Source: Podarcis liolepis
Lineage: Eukaryota
NCBI GenBank assembly: GCA_965112155.1
Contig: OZ218106.1
Reading direction: 5' to 3' (one strand)
Length of the DNA: 64,000 nt
Positions 19,690-28,904 of the stretch are shown here, one piece after another (position 1 is the first letter of the stretch; every line of letters begins with the position of its first letter). The notes under the pieces are model-generated. The model saw only the letters and a list, made by a program, of their open reading frames with translations, was not told the origin of the DNA and ran no database searches. A program made the position numbers and the translations under genes.

Positions 19690-21500
19690 AGAGCCCAACT
19701 CACCCGTGGCAGCAGCAGCAGCGAGCAGCAGCATCCCTGGCCGGGCTCTCCATCACCGGTGCTCCACGACGAAGCGCATGGTGGTGCCGTCGAAGGAAGG
19801 AGGCGCGATGATCCTGGGCCCCAGAGGCTGCGAAGTGATGCTGATGAGCGGCGCCTTCCCCTCGCCAGGAACCCCTTGCTGCTGCTGCTGTGGCGACTGC
19901 TGTGGCTGCTGCTGCTGAGCAGCTTTGCCCGTGGGCATGTAGTAAGGGCTGTCCGCCCCGGGGCTGGCGGGGCCGAGCTCTCCGCCCGGCTGCTGGGCGA
20001 GCTGGCCTTGCAGGGCGCTGGCGGGCAAGACGGCCGGCAAGAAGCCCGGGTAGATCATGTAGGCCGCGGCCGGGGCGCCGTAGGCTCCCGCCGCGCCCAG
20101 CGCCAGGGAGGACACCGGGAGGGTCATGGGGGCCACGGCCGGATTTGGCGCCTGGGCCGGCAGGGGCACCTCTACGTACTGCCCGGTCTCGGGGTCGAAG
20201 AGGCGCCTCTTCTGAGGCGGAGGCGGCGGCGGCTGCAGCGGCGCGTCCACCACGTAGCACTGCCCGGTGCTGAGGTCCAGCAGCACTTTGCGCTGCGTCT
20301 GAGGCGCCGAGAAAGCGGCGGGCTCGGCGGCCGCGGGCGGAGAGAAGCACAGCAGAGGCGCGGGCTGGGCAGCGCCCGAGAAAGCGGCGGCCGCCGCGGC
20401 CAAGGACAAGGCCTGAGGGAAGAACTGCGCGGGGGACACTTCGAACTGAGGCGGCGGCTGCTGTTGCGGAGGCGGCGGAGGATGAGGCTGCGGGGCGGCT
20501 GCCTCTCCGCGCTGCTGTTGCTTGGCCGCCTCCTGCCCGTGGGTCTTGCTGGTGCTGTAGGGCTGGTGGCTGCACAGAGCCGCGGCGGCCGCCGCCGCGG
20601 AAACTAGGCCCGGGCGGCCGCCTCGGTCTCCTGACGTGGCAGCCCCCGGCTGCTCCGTCGACGACGATGCCTTGAGAGGGATGGCCAGGTAGTTCCCGCA
20701 GTCGGGAGCCGCCGCCGCCACCTTGGGCACCCTGTCGGGCTCCACGAGGCTCCCCTGCCTGTCCCCAAAGAGCTTGATGGAGCGAGGCCCGGCCTGGCCT
20801 TTCAGGCCTCTTGGTGGCGGGTCAGGAGATGGCTCCTGAGGTGGCTGCTGCTGCTGTTGCTTGGGCTTCTGGGCCTGGGCATTGAAGGTGAAGGTGCTGC
20901 GGGGTGCCACCGGGGCCCTGCCTCTCTCCGTGCCCCCTGCGGCCTCCCCGCGGAAGCCCGGCCCGCGTGCCCGCTCCCGAGCCTGTGCCAAGCTTTCGAA
21001 GGTCGCCATCTTGGCTGACACCTTCTCTGCGTTCTTGGTTGGGTTGGCAGTCCGGCTGCGGGGTTGGCGCTCGGGTGCAGGCCTGCTGCTGGCGATGCTG
21101 CTGGGGGAAGTCGTCAAGGCCGCACTCTGACTGGCATCCTGCTCCTCTGCCTTGGCGCTGGCTGTGGACTCTTCCCTGGCTCCCGTGGCTCCTCCTGTGG
21201 CCTTTTCCTCGCTGGCGATGAGGGACAGGACGTGGCTGTCGGTGATGGGCAGCGGGTCGCTCTTGCGCTTCCACTCGTTCTTGTGGAAGCTGTAGAGCTC
21301 CTCCATGCTCCGGACGGCCGCTGTAAGTTTCTCCAGCGCTTGGTGGTTTGCTGTGAGGGGTGCCTTGGTCACCTCTTCTCGTGGAATTTCTTCTTCGCTA
21401 GCCACCACCAGTGGGCCTACCTTGCTGCTTTTCTCCACTGGTGTAGATTGAATTTGCGGCGGCGGCGGCTGTGGTTGCTGCCTCCAGGGCACAGATGTTT
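19690..21500. promoter_or_regulatory. Intragenic CpG-island-like segment over the 3' end of the C4orf54 CDS
   Basis: Visibly very GC-rich with dense CpG (gcggcggc, cgcg), in contrast to the CpG-poor 5' part of the same exon. Confidence 0.7.
19698..19706 (-). other. 5' splice donor ending the C4orf54 coding exon (3'-UTR intron)
   Basis: Minus strand reads CGG|GTGAGT, a consensus donor. Last exonic base is 19704, 49 nt after the TGA, at the edge of the GC-rich segment. Confidence 0.75.
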
Positions 21501-24500
21501 TGGAGACTATCTTCAGCACAGCAGGCTGGCGAGGGTCGCTTTTGTTAGGGGCGATTGTAGCTACGGGCAGCCTCCCTGAGGTCCTGTGCACCAGGATTGT
21601 CCCATCTTGGCTGGATGGCAGCATCTTGCCCCCGCTACTTGCTTTGGCCCCTGTCTCTGAAGCCTTGCTGGCCCTCTTGTCTTCCTTGCTGTTGCTTACT
21701 GCCTGACAGGTTATCACCATGGGAGACAGAGGCCTGGAAATGCCTGCTGTCACCAGCTGCTTGGGTTTCTGCTCAGATGTTCCCTGGTCAGAGTTGACAC
21801 TGCCTCTGTCACTGTTGTTATCCCCCGACTCATGGCTGTAGTTACTCTTAATTAGTTTCCTGACATCTGTAACCTGATGGATAGGCCCTTGCACCTTGTG
21901 TTTGTTTTCTCTTACATCGCGTACCAGAAATTGAGGCACTTTGTCCATACCTTCCCCTTTGAATTGTTTTTGATGCTGGCTTCTGGTATCTTCAGCTGCC
22001 TTGAAAAAGTTTGGGACACTTCCAGATAACTTGGGTGTGAGGAGCTTAGCAATATTGAAAGGGTGATCTTTATTCTGCTGCATGCTACCCAAGCTGATCT
22101 TGATCTCAGGAGGTTTGGGCTTTATCATTGTGGTAGCGATGGCAGTCTGAGCTGCTGTGTTGGTTGCTGTAGAATATTTTGTCACTTGTGTGCTGGATTG
22201 CTTTTCTTTGGTTGTTTGTTGAATATTTGGAACAAAGAGACGAGACATTTTAGTTGATTTGCTGGCTGAGAATTCTCCCAAATCAGCCTTCCTGTCACCT
22301 TTGGATGAAATTTTCAGTTTTCCCACAGGAGCTTTCTCCTCCTTTTTCTCTGCTTCTTTTTCTTTCCATGTTCTAAATGCACTATTCTGACTGCGGAGAA
22401 AAGTTGCCTTGAGAGTTTCAGAAGCACTCTCTTTTATTTTACATGCCTCGTCTAAGAATGTTTCAGAAAGGGATCGATCCAGGCTAACATTTCCATCCCG
22501 GGGAGTAGATGGCTTGGAGGTAGGGGACTTGCTGTCAAAAAACTCCCCCAAATCATCTGCTGTTACAATAGTGTATTCAGAGCTGCCTTCTGAATATCTA
22601 GAATTCTGTCTCTGCAAACCCCCATCCTTTAACTTTTCTTTGAAAGCACTATCTACCTCTTTAGAAGATAAGGAATTGGACATACCAGAATATGTGGTGT
22701 CCGAGATTTCGCCCCTTTCCATTTTGAACTCGTGCTCCAGTTGCATTTTCTTTGAGATAACATTTTTGAGGAGACTAGATGCAAACTTTGATTTATTCTG
22801 TGTGCCTTCCATGGTTTCTGCAGCCAGCCCAGTTTGTTTGCAAGTTTCATTGCCCAGCTCCTTTGGCAGTGTTTCTGTAACTTCATCTGTGCAACTTGAT
22901 CCAGCAGCAGCATTTTCAGAAGGTTTAGCAGGTCTGGGGACACCCGCTTTTATATTGCTGCTAAAATTGAGAGTCTCCAACAAAGTAACAACCCGGGAGC
23001 CTGACTGGATCCGTTTTTCAAAGCAAGGTGGTGTCTCAACATGCGTTATTTCCCCATCAAGCTTGCTGACAACAAACTCTAATGCTTTCGTCTGTGACTT
23101 ATTGGAGTGAATGTAGAACTGGTCACTGGATGTCTTTGTCCCAGTGCTTCTGTTCCATCCTGCAGATGCGGTGCTGCTTTTGAAAAGATTTTGCTCTGCT
23201 TTCTGCCCAAGGCTGCCGCACTTTAAATCCAAGTAAGTTGACCACCGGTTGATTCCTAGTGTGTGATCCGAAAGAGATGTGGAGGATTCACTGGAGCTCA
23301 GGTTCAAGGTATCAAAGTAGGGATAAGCTAAGCTGCGGAATGCCCTTGCTGTCAGGCTTCTTACTTCTTTATCTGCATCATCCAACTCACTTACCACGCT
23401 TGAGGCACCGCTTGAATATCCTCCCAATTCTCTTGCTCTTATGGCTCCACACCTTGTTTGCAAACGTGCAGGAACTGCAATAAATTTTTTTGCATAGTCA
23501 TGAAACACATCTTGTTTCAAACTTGAATTTCGTTCATGAGCTGTGGAGACACAGAGGCTCATGTCGCCTTCATGCTTGGCAGCATAAATAATGTTTTGCT
23601 TTTCGTGCTGGTTGCTAGGCTCATTTATAGCCCTGGAAGTTGGTTTGATTGATAGGAGTATCTGGCCTGCAGAATTCTCACTCATGTTGCTGAGGTTCTT
23701 GGACTGACTTTCTTCCGAGCTGGCGCATTTGTCTGTGCTAGGGGTATCATTTTCAGAATTAATGCTGACTATCTCTGTACTGCTGGTATTATCGATACTG
23801 TCTGTCTGATTATTGGGATCACTGGTGGTCGTGCTGAGATAACAGCTATTGTCCTCTTCTGTCTGGGTATCCGCAAGAGTCTCGTCACTCCCAAAGGAAG
23901 CGTAATCCACAAAGGAATAAATCACATTGTTGTCCTCGAAATCCCACCGAGAGGCTAACCCATAATCAAAGTCCATGTCATGGTCCACTTCGCTAAGCTG
24001 GATTTCATGGGTTGTAATATAATGTGCTTCATCATTATTGTTACAGTTGTTCTCACTGGTGTAGCTTTGCTGCGAGTGCATCAGTTGTGAAGCACGCCTG
24101 CACCCTCCTCTCTGGTTACTCAGACAGATTTCTTTGCAGTCTGCATCATCGTCCTCATCACTTTCATATCCAAATGAAGAAGAGGAGGTTTTCCCCTCCG
24201 TTCCCATGTCATCCATTTTTGGAAAGCTGCCTGTCTCTTGTACTGGCGAAGGACAAGAGGATGAGGATGATTCTGGGCAGCCATTTGTGTAAAGCTGAAT
24301 GTTGGAGATACTAGGGGACAAAGTGTTCTCAGACCCTTCTGAGCTGGTGCCAGTGATGCTTCCCCCCACCTCATCAGCCTTCATCCCCACAGGGGAAGGA
24401 GTGCCTTCCATTTTAGATTTATAATCCTGGGGTGCTTCATTTGCAGATTTGTCTGCCAGCATATTGTTAGCCAATCTATTAACCTCACTGATCCCATAAG

Positions 24501-24741
24501 GTCCATTTTTAGGTTTGATAAAGGCCACTTTACTTCCATTCCCTGCCAAAGTCAGTTTTAGAGCTTGGGGACTCTCTCCCCTCCCTCCAGGGAAATCATA
24601 AATCTCCACATATTTTGATTCCTCAGATGAGGATGTTGATGGCTCTTGAGAATGGTGCTTCATCATCCGGCTGTTGCTTTCTCCAGCACTCCCTTTTTGA
24701 GTGATGATCTGCTCAGCAGGCGATTTTGTAAGCAGTTCCAT
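19753..24741 (-). CDS. C4orf54: C4orf54 orthologue, large mostly disordered DUF4585-domain protein (~1662 aa), single coding exon
   Basis: 5-kb uninterrupted ORF. First ATG at 24741 is in strong Kozak context (GGA [12 protein letters not shown]...); the track's start at 24810 is a GTG. Blocks recognised from C4orf54: [119 protein letters not shown], DUF4585-like [18 protein letters not shown]...[15 protein letters not shown], and C-terminal [21 protein letters not shown]. Confidence 0.92.
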   Translation of the reverse strand: [1662 protein letters not shown]

Positions 24742-24760
24742 TCCGATCACTGCAAATTGA

Positions 24761-24780
24761 CTGAAGGGAACAAAGAGATT
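24761..24780 (-). other. Candidate 3' splice acceptor 19 nt upstream of the main C4orf54 ATG
   Basis: Minus strand aatctctttgttcccttcAG|tcaatttgcagtgatcggaATG: pyrimidine tract plus CAG. Confidence 0.4.
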
Positions 24781-24854
24781 TCGACCAAGACTCGAAGCTG
24801 GGACACACACACACGTGTCTCCAGTGGTTGGTTCCCAACTTCACTCCCTGCAGT

Positions 24855-25100
24855 TTAGCGGAAGACCCTGGAGAGACGCCCGATAGTCCCGCAGTGGTAG
24901 TAAGGCGGGTGGCTGCTGTTGTCTCTGCGGAGATGGGGGGGTAGCTGCTGCTGCCAGTGTCTTATTCCAGAGCTATGAAGTACAGTTGTTGGTTTGGCAC
25001 GAAGAGCTGTCAGTCTGAATGCCATTGGTAACTGAAGTAGCAGTATTAGCAGCATCTGCAGCTCAGCTTCCCCAGACATCCCAAAATGAAGAGAAAGCAT
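24855..25100 (-). CDS. Candidate upstream ORF (81 aa; 66 aa from internal ATG 25055) in the C4orf54 leader, out of frame with the main CDS
   Basis: ATG-initiated ORF MLSLHFG...MLLILLLQLPMAFRLTALRAKPTT...RVFR ending in TAA 113 nt before the main ATG. Contains a hydrophobic stretch. Translation is not demonstrated. Confidence 0.4.
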   Translation of the reverse strand: MLSLHFGMSGEAELQMLLILLLQLPMAFRLTALRAKPTTVLHSSGIRHWQQQLPPHLRRDNSSHPPYYHCGTIGRLSRVFR

Positions 25101-25124
25101 ATGGAAATTCTTGTACTTCTAGTT

Positions 25125-25285
25125 ATGAAAGGGGCGGGGGGGGGGCTGTTCAGTATATAGTCGTTATATAGTTAGAGGAATATTAGCCTTATTTATTACG
25201 TAGTATTTGGACGGAGAGAATGCTCTGTGACAAGAAGAAGGGTGGAAAGCATATACTGCTGTTTGAAGTGCTAATTTTAAATATA
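25125..25285 (-). promoter_or_regulatory. Region upstream of the uORF: GC box, TATA-like and MEF2-like motifs, or alternatively branch point plus acceptor
   Basis: GGGGCGGGG at ~25131, TATATAA on minus at 25170-25164, CTAATTTTAA (YTA(A/T)4TAR) at 25271-25280. The same stretch also fits a branch point CTCTAAC (25177-25171) plus AACAG acceptor (25146). Confidence 0.3.
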
Positions 25286-27050
25286 TAAATAAAAATTCCA
25301 GACACTGTTTGCGTGGACAAGAGGCCCACATTGAACTAAGTTTTCATACAGCATTGAAGACAACAAATTACTTGCATTTTTAGTAGTAAACTTTTTAAAA
25401 CTTCCGATTTTTAGTTCATATTAGAGAAGTTAGTTTGTCTAGCACCTGGTTGAAATGTCATGCAAAAATGTTTAAAGTATTTCATGCTCAAAGTATTTCA
25501 AAAAGTTTTTCTTTAGTGTAGCCCCATATCAAAATTATTGTTTTCCTCCAAAATACTTGAAGCAGACATCTTCTGGATATCTTAGAACACATCTAGTTAA
25601 ATAAAAGAATTTAGGTAATTTTAAATTACATAGAATCTATCAGTTAAACCCTCAATCCTATAAACTGAGTACAGGAGGAAAGAGTTTTAGTCAAGGCATG
25701 TCAGCCACAATTAATTGCACTTAATTCCCATTAGAGTCAAGGGGACTTAAGCATGTCTAACTTTATGCTGGATTGTGGCCACCTGTTATAATCAGATCTA
25801 ATCACATTTCAGCACAGAAGACAATTGATAATCTTGGGTAACAAATCATTTACCTTCTCTCTGACTCTTGTAAAGCTGTTCCTTGGATAACAAGCAACTT
25901 TTTGTACCTCACAGGAAGAAAATAATTTCCTACTGAATCTTCAGATATGTCTTTAACCGTCTGGAAAGGGAAGTTGAAGAGAAGCACTGGGAAAATGTTA
26001 AACTGGTTTGGATTTTCATAGCCACTTTGGTGAGAGTAATGAAACTGTGGAGCATTTTTGTAAGATCAGTGTAGCTTGCTAGGTCAAAACTATTAACTAT
26101 ACATAGACTGTGTGTCATATCATCCGATTGAATAAAGTACTATTTTAAACTATCACATTTGTGCATAGCAGAAATAAATGTGTTCAGCCATCAGTCACAG
26201 CAAGAATCCCAACCCCCGCTAATAAAATGTTCTTGCCCATCTTTCTACTTTCAAATATTTAAGGTGGAAAGCTGTTACTGAGAGCAAGGAAAATACAAAA
26301 AAAAGATGTGAAATTGTGGATCACGTAGAATTAAGTGACATTTGCATAGGAACTGTAGTTTGGAAAAATTCTTCATTTGGGTAACCTGTGGTTGGAAAAA
26401 CCATGTTCCAAATGTATATCTCCTTCTGGACCAGAGGCAATGTTCTTTACCATGTTTTTTCTTTACAATGTTCTGCTTTAAAACAATGTTGGCTAATATG
26501 AAAATTAAGGGAACAGTTCCATAACCATATAATTTATTTCTATTCACTTTCTTTGAAAAAGAGTGTAGTACAGAAATGCTAAATATTCAGAATTCTAAAA
26601 CTTCAAAAGAATAAACACTTGAGCAGCACTAAAACAGCATATAACTTTTAAAACAGCAGGGGATGGGGCATACATCAAGTGCCTGGCTGGATAAAAAAAT
26701 GTGTTTATAGACTTCCTTAAAGCAGGAAGTAAGGGAGCCTGTTAGATCTATTCAGGGAGAAAGCTCCATGACCATGGCACCACCACCCAGAAGACCCTTT
26801 CCATGGTGCCCAAGTACTTCGGATATGTCTGGAAATGGTTGGAAAGGAGAGTCAAACCCACAGTGGCATCATCTCTTTCCACTGGAGACAGGCCAAAGAC
26901 TGTCCAAAGCCTATCTTCGGGCTAAAGTAAATTAATATTGGCAAAGGTAGACCTTAAGGTAACCTGGGTGTCTTTATTGTTATGCAATAGGGATTTGTTT
27001 GTTGTGAGAAGACATTTCATTTCCATCGGTGGGAAAAGGAACAGCAGTAG

Positions 27051-27130
27051 TGTTATGTACTTGAGTTGAATAGGATCCAAAATGCAGCAATCTGATTGGT
27101 CCTAGAACAATGCAGCAGTCTGATTGGTCC
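27051..27130 (+). mobile_element. 5' fragment of the same LTR family as 1810-2108
   Basis: tgttatgtacttgagttgaataggatccaaaatgcagcaatctgattggtcctagaacaat is near-identical to the start of the 1810 LTR. Confidence 0.8.
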
Positions 27131-28691
27131 AGCTCAGTTTTGGTCAGTAACATTTCCTCATAACATCAGGTAGCTGGTTAGGGTAGACTTCTATTTAACA
27201 TTGGCAATGCTGCGTAAGGTGAAACTTGTGAAACAATTTAAGATGGAGTCTTATGTGTCATTAGTAGATAGAAAGATTACTAACATTAAAGATGATTAAT
27301 ATTGAAATAGAATGAAAATAGATCCGTAAGAAAGGAGGGAAAGAGAGTGACACGTGCCACATTCCATCTTTTTTAGGAGAAGAACTTTGATGATACTCAA
27401 CAATGGGAGAATATCCAGATAAGAGGGTGGTGGTTTTTTTTTTTTTTTTACTAATTTACCCACTATAGTCTATTAATAACTGATAATTTTGAAGTAATTG
27501 TTGTCCAGAAGAATTCTGTGACTACAAAATAAGACAATTTTAAAATTATAGTTAGATCGAAGACAGCATTTCTAGGAAAATGGAATGCTCAGGTTATATT
27601 ACCGGCTGGACATTCAATCGGAGTAAGGCACTGAGCCAATCATACAGTGTTCATAATGTAACAACCTCCCGTACAGGATAGCCAAATTTGGGAATCAATT
27701 TGGATCATGAATCACTTCTCAGGACATCTGTGTCTAAGATCAGGTGGGAGGGATTTAAGTCCCTGGGCAGTAGAAAGGAAAAGCATCACAATTTCACACT
27801 TTAGCATCTGGTCATGGAGAGCTATTTCAAGTGTCCAGGAAGGTCCAGTGGGAGAAAGATAATTTCCAGGGAGGAAATTGATTATGAAGGGCAAAAACTG
27901 GTTTGGAAGGACGTCTTGTTTTAAGAGTTGCCTGCAAAAAAATACCCCCAGTTACAACCTGTCATCTCTGTACCCAGTATGAAAATTCAACACATTTAAT
28001 GAAGTTTCCACTACATGCCAGGAGTTCAGATTGTAGCTTGCTTTTTGAGGTTTGCAAGTCACCATGGGCTGACTGGATAGCACCAAGAATTCCATTAGCT
28101 TGTACAAAACGGCCCTCTAGTGTTGAAATATTATATTGTATTAGTTTCTTGGTGTTTCAGAAGATAAAGACACGCCTTCAAAAAATATGTAATCTCCTAC
28201 TTTAGTCTGCAACATGGTTGCTACTAGGAAAGTTTAATGTAGAACATTTTTCATAAGAAGTATTAGATACTGATGCCTTGAGTCTTGAGGGCCATCCAAA
28301 GACGTCTGATACAATTAATACTGCAGACTTTGGTGTGCAGCAGAATTTATTTGATAGAGTGTAAAGTGATTTACTTTACATAAGCACCTATTCCATCAGT
28401 CTGCAGGAGAGAGAGAGGGGTGGGGAAGGGAAGGGAAGGGAAACAGGGCCACTCCATCTGTTCAACTGAGAGACCAGCTTCTGGTGCCTCCTCTTCAATT
28501 GTTGTTTTTTTATTCTAGTCGGTTGTTATAAAAACTTAGATCAGGTGGCCGAGTTTCCTTTTATTACTGATTTTTATAGCCACTGTATGCTTTTTTCTGG
28601 TTGAGAGGTGGGACAAAACTGCTACGAAAACATCTAAATTTAGAGCCACTTTGGGCCTTCTTTCAGGTCAAACTTTGCTGAAAACACTATA

Positions 28692-28904
28692 CAGTGGTAC
28701 CTTGGGTTAAGTACTTAATTCGTTCCAGAGGTCTGTTCTTAACCTGAAAGTGTTCTTAACCTGAAGCACCACTTTAGCTAATGGGGCCTCCTGCTTCTGC
28801 CGCGCCGCCGGAGCAAGATTTCTTCTCATCCTGAAGCAAAGTTCTTAACCTGAGGTAATATTTCTGGGTTAGCGGAGTCTGTAACCTGAAGTGTATGTAA
28901 CCTG
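28692..28904. mobile_element. Family A MITE, inverted, right TIR partly deleted
   Basis: Left TIR CAGTGGTACCTTGGGTTAA after TA; interior matches the other copies in reverse. Confidence 0.85.

Follow-up and report, generated by a model that had tools for sequence, protein, structure and literature searches.

The C4orf54 locus

The window analysed was a stretch of 64,000 nt from Podarcis liolepis (contig OZ218106.1, assembly GCA_965112155.1). The CDS of the C4orf54 homologue is located on the minus strand at 19753..24741 and encodes a protein of 1663 aa with a DUF4585 domain (PF15232). This product is 99% identical to the C4orf54 homologue of Podarcis lilfordi and both begin at the same methionine. 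The start codon at 24741 lies in a strong context, with G at -3 and G at +4, in agreement with the original prediction. The same internal Met was used as start by 18 of 23 lepidosaur models and by seven of seven lacertid models, the latter from five species.

Upstream of the main start, the minus strand carries an upstream ORF (uORF) of 81 codons (25100-24855), extending from an ATG at 25100 to a TAA at 24857-24855. Re-reading of the DNA bore out the claim that this ORF ends 113 nt ahead of the ATG at 24741 and that the spacer holds no ATG. Three further upstream ATGs (uATGs) are present at 25079, 25055 and 25025 (span 25023..25081, minus strand), and every one of the four ATGs of the leader is in the uORF frame. 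The bases at -3 of 25100, 25079, 25055 and 25025 are C, G, C and C, giving weak or intermediate contexts; that of uATG1 at 25100 is weak, with C at both -3 and +4. ATG-initiated ORFs of at least 81 codons occurred in 3% of shuffled leaders, and 37 such ORFs were counted in the 64-kb window, indicating that the uORF taken bare is not beyond chance. Considered together with its homology, as judged from the sequence comparisons below, it is not random.

The 281 nt directly upstream of the main start (24742..25022, minus strand) are free of ATG in all frames, a state reached by 5% of dinucleotide shuffles. A possible TATA box, TATATAA, was located on the same strand at 25164..25170, about 65 nt upstream of uATG1, and G+C content steps from 33% to 50% at this site. 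Two RNA runs had a read depth of zero over 24000-26950 and on the gene as a whole.

Homology of the leader to the N-terminal extension of mammals and turtles

The C4orf54 models of non-human mammals and of turtles begin with MLS(L/F)HFW, and their N-terminal extension reads DAAPSV(A/T)(D/N)GIQT...CQ(A/T)NN. The lizard counterparts are the first codons of the uORF and the stop-broken main frame, respectively. The mammalian similarity of the MLSFHFW and CQANN type, part of the original prediction, was thus confirmed with non-human mammal and turtle models. The mammal comparison covered non-human species only, and six Logan-derived mammal-type proteins entered the counts only. The ancestral start was present in 34 of 36 mammal-type models and the main-frame block in 33 of 36. 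Among turtles, the extension was carried by 4 of 10 models, plus Emys, Platysternon and Trachemys, and its frame path was open in emydids, chelydrids, platysternids and testudinids.

As 34 of 36 mammal-type models and several turtle families keep this frame path open, the extension is ancestral and the lizard state derived. The mammalian extension is thus not the mis-annotation or lineage-specific fusion that had been suggested. The ancestral extension comprises about 125-130 codons and runs into the conserved internal Met (24741). Homology identifies the ancestral amniote C4orf54 start codon (MLSLHF...) with 25098..25100 on the minus strand, now uATG1.

The lizard leader is homologous to the mammalian and turtle extension at the DNA level and collinear with it over about 360 nt, sharing its start codon, its GIQT...CQ.NN block and its middle part. 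This homology also bears out the prediction that the leader DNA is conserved although the lizard no longer keeps the ancestral frame intact. Homology thus extends from the same ATG, but a continuous ORF with the main CDS is absent: the lizard copy is out of frame with the protein, with four frame changes and three stops, and its ATG reads the block in another frame.

Frame breaks in the lizard leader

The ancestral extension is broken in Podarcis by three main-frame stops on the minus strand (24841..25065), a TGA at 25065-25063, a TAG at 24975-24973 and a TGA at 24843-24841, exactly where they had been predicted. Frameshift-aware alignment placed the turtle ORFs on the lizard DNA in the uORF frame at 25100-25065, then in the main frame at 25062-24940, the third frame at 24937-24827, the uORF frame at 24824-24756 and the main frame from 24753. 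When Python was aligned in the same way, its ORF followed the uORF frame at 25100-24933, the third frame at 24931-24785, the uORF frame again and then the main frame.

The first frame junction lies at 25056..25073 (minus strand), where the alignment changes frame between 25065 and 25062. With the turtle residues back-translated, Podarcis, Python and Sceloporus appear to carry a net +2 nt at 25056..25073 compared with the ORF of turtles and mammals; reading from the old ATG would therefore enter the following block shifted by one base from the ancestral frame. At a C7 homopolymer (24935..24941, minus strand), the alignment showed the Podarcis uORF frame departing from the frame of Python and Sceloporus. 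An open stretch in the third frame (24716..24961, minus strand) contains no ATG and corresponds by homology to the middle part of the extension in Python, Sceloporus, turtles and mammals, with 75% identity to Sceloporus over 32 aa. This stretch is unreachable from any Podarcis ATG.

Contigs of two other DNA data sets, from organisms A and B, cover 24622-25113, with 4 base differences and 0 gaps, and 24771-25922, with a sole indel at 25137, outside the ORF. The data sets X1 and X2 were classed as DNA because of their even coverage of intergenic sequence. Where these contigs cover the ORF, the C7 run at 24941-24935 included, no indels were reported, indicating that the frame structure of the covered parts is not an assembly indel error. 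That the frame breaks are assembly or sequencing errors and the lizard extension is really intact and mammal-like is therefore close to refuted and scarcely credible. One junction does sit in the C7 homopolymer, a typical error site, but neither of the other DNA data sets has an indel within 24771-25113, and at least four frame changes and all three stops would have to be wrong. The start of all lacertid models at the internal Met likewise stands against an intact extension.

A leader of intronic nature, with an untranslated upstream exon spliced to an acceptor-like site at 24761 (or 24751) and the uORF removed from the mature mRNA, is very improbable. By sequence, a strong polypyrimidine tract followed by AG is present at 24761..24778 on the minus strand, and the Sceloporus model contains a short intron which joins ...LQG to the sequence just ahead of the main Met. 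However, the whole ancestral extension aligns collinearly with the 360 nt, leaving no gap the size of an intron, the G+C content resembles that of an exon from about 25150 into the CDS, and the Sceloporus intron, which would span some 85 nt, may be an artefact of gene prediction. The acceptor-like site itself is probably coincidental, as the homologous letters are coding in Python (ILLFPS...).

The shifted frame in squamates

The uORF frame is matched in Python over codons 1-49 and in Sceloporus over codons 8-49, with peptide identities of 43/49 and 37/42 (88% each). Identity over the first 500 aa of the main protein is 88% to Python and 82% to Sceloporus. The uORF-frame peptide is thus as conserved as this part of the main protein, which is also what selection at the peptide level would give. 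In Python, the old ATG opens a single continuous ORF that crosses the shifted block and enters the protein, so that some squamates may still use the shifted reading as coding sequence. The Podarcis uORF departs from the register of Python and Sceloporus in its last ~29 codons and its stop; its start is shared. Only two of the 23 lepidosaur models use the shifted frame, and a search with the Python extension recovered the shifted reading only in the models of Python and Sceloporus.

No stand-alone homologue of the uORF product was found among proteins of 45-142 aa in 5.8 billion sequences. The 81-aa product gave one match in a search of 1.84 billion representatives, covering residues 34-64 with 30% identity, which was taken as spurious. 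Titles and abstract openings of literature naming C4orf54 or 1110002E22Rik held nothing on the start, on uORFs or on microproteins. Among squamates, 4 of 7 uORF-frame replacements are silent in the ancestral frame, which is not significant (P 0.14-0.29); with a sea turtle added, the count was 6 of 11, and the overall range of P (0.09-0.29) reflects a test with no power.

The uORF product had been described as signal-peptide-like. Its hydrophobicity peaks at 2.36 (Kyte-Doolittle, 11-residue window) at residues 16-26, but the n-region ahead of this run has no basic residue, and in the 81-aa form it contains two Glu. Codon lists showed that the Ala/Thr codons GCT GCT ACT, when read one base later, give CTG CTA CTT. 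The Leu-rich hydrophobic run is therefore an expected by-product of reading a GCT-rich Ala/Thr stretch at +1, and it is this reading, judged from the codons, that forms the putative signal peptide. A new secreted microprotein encoded by the uORF is unproven.

A conserved core of 65 nt

Within the leader, a core at 24979..25043 (minus strand) is identical in 62 of 65 nt (95%) to the inferred sea-turtle DNA, with two stretches of complete identity, one of 30 nt (25032-25003) and one of 22 nt (25000-24979). The sea-turtle DNA is a composite of three species inferred from two annotated frames, not read. In the comparison with Podarcis, 90 positions were the same and 17 different, the differences falling 5/5/7 on the three codon positions. 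This even distribution, a test which rests on those 17 differences, makes the constraint look nucleotide-level and not peptide-level. Conservation without codon periodicity, as found here in a small sample against inferred turtle DNA, is that of a conserved non-coding element.

CCAAT, TGACAG, GCCAA and CAACTG were picked by eye as candidate motifs in the core. A 25-nt piece of the core had no match in a metagenome scan. The leader did not behave as a structured RNA element: it folded no better than its shuffles (z = -0.03) and had no match in Rfam at E <= 1.

Origin of the leader

On the observed homology, frame path, stops and uATG contexts, the 360-nt leader is explained best, and with moderate confidence, as the decayed remnant of the ancestral amniote C4orf54 N-terminal extension, whose relic start codon has turned into the start of a uORF. 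The ancestral protein would have started at the ATG at 25100 and run about 125-130 codons into the internal Met at 24741. A net +2-nt change, some 10 codons past the old ATG, probably put the next ~45 codons in another frame in squamates. In the lacertid, the frame would have changed again at the C7 run (24941-24935) and around 24825 and 24755, which together with the three stops would have cut the old start from the protein, so that the main ORF is annotated from the internal Met. The old ATG would now open the 81-codon uORF ending 113 nt upstream of the main start. If the 5' end of the mRNA lies upstream of 25100, the four same-frame uATGs may intercept a share of the ribosomes during scanning and lower C4orf54 translation, and the remaining ribosomes could reach the strong main ATG via leaky scanning or reinitiation. 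Conservation of the core, over 65-110 nt, would act on the nucleotides, as a DNA or RNA element within the old first exon, and not on the uORF peptide.

The conserved block might also be a promoter-proximal or first-exon DNA control element with CCAAT, MEIS-like, NFI-half and E-box motifs, a possible but doubtful reading. Lepidosaur transcripts would then begin 3' of the four ATGs and lack the uORF, their true 5' UTR being the 281-nt ATG-free stretch. The 30-nt and 22-nt perfect runs against inferred sea-turtle DNA, with no codon periodicity, are consistent with such an element, as is the lack of ATG over the 281 nt ahead of the main ATG (5% of shuffles, against a background of 6.2 per 281 nt). 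The missing RNA-structure signal and Rfam match favour a role at the DNA level over one at the RNA level. However, the same DNA is annotated CDS in mammals and turtles and is thus transcribed there, the TATA-like box and the G+C step are found farther upstream than the uATG, around 25170-25150, and the motif matches are short and unvalidated. Selection on the shifted frame in squamates, the idea of the original prediction, is unlikely. A compensated frameshift would have recoded a segment of ~45 residues in the extension as a hydrophobic peptide, kept as an N-terminal extension in Python or as a separate microprotein of 81 aa (or 66 aa) in Podarcis; the Podarcis product would be a membrane or secreted protein made from a bicistronic mRNA. 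In accordance with this, the frame is likewise open in Python and Sceloporus, where 49 and 42 codons, respectively, show 88% identity, the Python ORF is continuous through the shifted block, all four leader ATGs are in the shifted frame (P about 0.04 if independent), the product has its hydrophobic peak at residues 16-26, and one Dermochelys model likewise begins in the shifted frame, at MAFRLTAL. Against it stand the Podarcis tail of about 29 codons and its stop, whose register is unlike that of Python and Sceloporus, the want of a stand-alone homologue, the use of the frame in just two of 23 lepidosaur models, and the squamate core replacements, 4 of 7 being silent in the ancestral frame without significance. 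Nor were lizard-turtle differences depleted (5 of 17) at the codon position whose changes are non-synonymous in either frame, and the n-region without a basic residue, with two Glu ahead of the hydrophobic run in the full-length form, and the mechanical origin of the Leu-rich run from GCT repeats point the same way. The case for such selection is one frame common to three squamates over about the first 49 codons, and it is weakened by the tail and stop out of register and by the lack of a stand-alone homologue and of lizard-turtle codon periodicity. That the shifted peptide has been kept for an estimated 170 My or more and is a lacertid stand-alone microprotein from a bicistronic muscle mRNA, or that the ~65-nt core is dual-constrained across amniotes, with one frame coding and another functional, is improbable.

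Comparison with known systems

uORFs lower the output of the main ORF, and long uORFs reinitiate poorly. As in regulatory uORFs of vertebrate mRNAs, the Podarcis leader has an AUG and an in-frame stop upstream of the main AUG, with uATGs ahead of a strong main ATG, a stop before it and a 113-nt spacer. Unlike these, the candidate is unusually long (81 codons) and derived from former coding sequence. Other leaders encode conserved peptides or microproteins, e.g. MIEF1-MP and ASDURF. The split of the Podarcis lineage from those of Python and Sceloporus is estimated at about 170-190 million years ago, and the first ~50 uORF residues are common to lineages of that estimated age. The end of the Podarcis ORF and its last ~29 residues are, however, not conserved, and both an annotated stand-alone homologue and codon periodicity are missing.

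The leader also resembles conserved non-coding elements in or near first exons, given the 62 of 65 nt shared by the lizard and the inferred sea-turtle DNA and differences which are independent of codon position. In contrast to these, mammals and turtles use the sequence for coding, and the Podarcis element is a candidate by sequence. For the recoding of proteins by compensated frameshifts, or overprinting, the work of Raes and Van de Peer from 2005 is reportedly an example. The Python block fits this description, being read in the shifted frame before the ORF returns to the ancestral frame and into the protein. In Podarcis the compensation is missing, and the shifted reading therefore ends in a stop.

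Under the favoured reading, the decayed extension would be a clear and datable case of a vertebrate gene start moving, in which an extension decays by frameshifts, its old ATG becomes the start of a uORF and an internal Met takes over. The hydrophobic alternative frame of an Ala-rich exon can be mistaken for a signal peptide, which calls for caution. What merits interest here is the ~65-nt core, which hardly differs between turtle and lizard regardless of reading frame. Should it be a control element or a dual-use sequence, it would be relevant to a poorly understood gene which appears in studies of striated muscle and heart. The decayed extension would also account for the disagreeing gene models at this locus, where Python, Sceloporus and sea turtles take different frames, short introns and starts.

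Leader of the C4orf54 homologue

On the minus strand, the main ORF of the C4orf54 homologue extends from the ATG at 24741 to 19753 (1663 aa). Its first 500 residues are 99% identical to those of the Podarcis lilfordi homologue (DUF4585, PF15232), whose start Met is the same, and all seven lacertid models in the cluster, from five species, begin at the Met equivalent to 24741. The main ATG has a G at both -3 and +4. As stated in the original prediction, the main frame 5' of it contains stops at 25065, 24975 and 24843, and the upstream ORF (uORF) described there was also confirmed: it comprises 81 codons on the minus strand, from the ATG at 25100 to the TAA at 24857-24855, and the next ATG, 113 nt away, is that of the main ORF. 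All four leader ATGs (25100, 25079, 25055 and 25025, minus strand) are in the uORF frame, in weak or intermediate contexts. The 281 nt directly 5' of the main ATG are free of ATGs, as was also seen in 5% of shuffles. The length of the uORF alone is unremarkable; 3% of shuffled leaders contained an ORF of this length, and 37 such ORFs occur within the window. The third frame is open without an ATG for 81 codons (24716-24961, minus strand), overlapping the main start and ending at a TGA at 24715; loss of one base from a C7 run (24941-24935) would make this stretch part of an overlapping uORF of about 128 codons. Two RNA runs gave zero depth over the C4orf54 homologue.

Two other DNA data sets, from related animals, provided contigs spanning 24622-25113 and 24771-25922, and neither contig showed an indel in the part of the uORF that it covers. 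The frame structure there is thus not due to an assembly indel error.

Ancestral extension and its shifted frame

N-termini of 120 C4orf54 orthologues were compared (human sequence not used). An MLS(L/F)HFW start was present in 34/36 mammal-type models, and a DAAPSV(A/T)(D/N)GIQT...CQ(A/T)NN block, 5' of the conserved internal Met (24741 in the lizard), in 33/36. Emydid, chelydrid, testudinid and platysternid turtles showed the same start and block, so that the similarity cited in the original prediction holds for non-human mammals and turtles. Models beginning at the internal Met were found in lepidosaurs (18/23) and birds (38/51). Mapping of orthologue proteins on the lizard DNA by frameshift-aware alignment placed the turtle ORF in the uORF frame at 25100-25065, the main frame at 25062-24940, the third frame at 24937-24827, the uORF frame at 24824-24756 and the main frame from 24753. 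Marsupial and sloth ORFs took a similar path; aardvark and elephant alignments diverged from it in the weakly similar 3' part. As judged from these alignments, the 360-nt leader is what remains, collinear and without an intron, of an ancestral extension about 125-130 codons long, which in the lizard is interrupted by four frame changes and three stops. Since the same path is open in mammals and turtles, the extension is ancestral to amniotes and the lizard state derived; its interpretation as a mammalian mis-annotation or lineage-specific fusion was rejected.

Among the protein models compared, those of Natator (P0140) and of bats, Rhynchocyon and a Logan-derived protein (P0086, P0103, P0107, P0101 and P0120) have an ORF open for 25-55 codons 5' of the ancestral ATG, so that transcripts there must begin well upstream of the equivalent of 25100; the old Met is replaced by Val in Natator and by Ile in Molossus (P0107). 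The Platysternon megacephalum model P0143, a clear C4orf54 homologue with an MLSLHFW start, bears the source name 'mothers against decapentaplegic-like protein 1', probably a naming error. Sea-turtle models (P0026, P0128-P0141) give at least five N-termini for one locus across annotation pipelines, which differ in the frame taken (three in all), in short predicted introns and in the use of internal starts; gene models are therefore unstable over the extension block.

The uORF-frame reading was present in two squamate models. Python has a single continuous ORF, which takes the uORF frame over 25100-24933, the third frame over 24931-24785, the uORF frame again and finally the main frame; Sceloporus has the same first two segments, followed by a short predicted intron. 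Back-translation of the turtle residues indicates that Podarcis, Python and Sceloporus share a net +2 nt soon after the old ATG, relative to turtles and mammals, the first frame junction lying at 25065/25062 in the frameshift-aware alignment; the next approximately 45 codons are thus read one base off. Where Podarcis has the C7 run, Python and Sceloporus regain the ancestral frame; Podarcis does not, and reaches a stop 28 codons on. Identity to Podarcis in the shared uORF-frame part (Python 43/49, Sceloporus 37/42) is no lower than that of the main protein (88% and 82%, respectively). The Podarcis uORF tail is unrelated to those of the other two, and the Podarcis third frame, reached by no ATG, retains 75% identity with the Sceloporus ORF across 32 residues. 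Four of seven squamate replacements were silent in the ancestral frame, which is not significant.

A microprotein or bicistronic mRNA, as originally predicted, has in its favour the frame common to three squamates, the one point found to support it, and we regard it as unlikely. Among 5.8 billion sequences, none of the proteins of 45-142 aa resembled the uORF product, and the one match among 1.84 billion representatives (residues 34-64, 30% identity) we take to be spurious; the Python extension as query matched only Python and Sceloporus. The hydrophobic run (uORF residues 16-26, Kyte-Doolittle 2.36) lies on DNA that is Ala/Thr-rich when read in the ancestral frame: GCT GCA GAT GCT GCT AAT ACT GCT ACT becomes CTG CAG ATG CTG CTA ATA CTG CTA CTT in the uORF frame, so the Leu-rich stretch results mechanically from the frame shift. 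No basic residue precedes the run, and the full-length product has two Glu there; the run is not positive evidence of a signal peptide.

Conserved core

Sea-turtle annotations cover both frames (main-frame path in Natator and Caretta; uORF frame in Caretta, Natator and Dermochelys), and one DNA sequence satisfying both translations was derived, a three-species composite with 107/109 nt determined. Compared with Podarcis, 90 nt were identical and 17 different. In the core at 25043-24979, 62/65 nt were identical, including uninterrupted matches of 30 and 22 nt. By codon position the 17 differences numbered 5, 5 and 7, a small sample that matched the wobble pattern of neither reading frame, and the position non-synonymous in both frames was not spared. 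Constraint at the nucleotide level, or very slow decay, would be expected to give this pattern, as far as a small sample and composite turtle DNA may indicate. Candidate motifs seen by eye in the core were CCAAT, TGACAG, GCCAA and CAACTG. The leader had no Rfam match and folded no better than shuffles, which gives no indication of a structured RNA. The frame-independent conservation of this core of about 65 nt is the residual puzzle.

Putative promoter and possible effect on translation

A candidate TATA box, TATATAA (25164-25170, minus strand), lies about 65 nt 5' of the old ATG, beside a step in G+C at about 25150 from approximately 33% to 50%. Both features suggest a transcription start near 25140, which would place all four upstream ATGs inside the mRNA. 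Alternatively, transcription may start below 25025, the block being a promoter-proximal element and the mRNA lacking the uORF. The lizard sequence demonstrably retains the old start codon and the extension, out of frame with the protein, and the finding is best classed as a relic start codon that has become a uORF. With the uORF inside the mRNA, part of the scanning ribosomes would initiate in its frame and stop at 24855. The length of a uORF limits reinitiation, which would here be inefficient; the remaining ribosomes would leak past the weak upstream contexts to the strong main ATG, and C4orf54 translation would be damped.

The contig of one of the two related animals (organism B) has four extra nucleotides (GGGC) in a C/G-rich run at 25137, 3' of the TATA-like box and just 5' of the uORF start at the old ATG; the putative promoter or leader is thus polymorphic in length. 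At 28690-28904 and 27069-27131, DNA contigs and RNA reads of high-copy repeats were stacked to depths of 10^3-10^5. Loose ends were numerous at 28689-28691 and 28902-28904, and joints linking opposite strands occurred between 28709 and 28904; these segments have the appearance of an interspersed repeat that is expressed and carries inverted ends.
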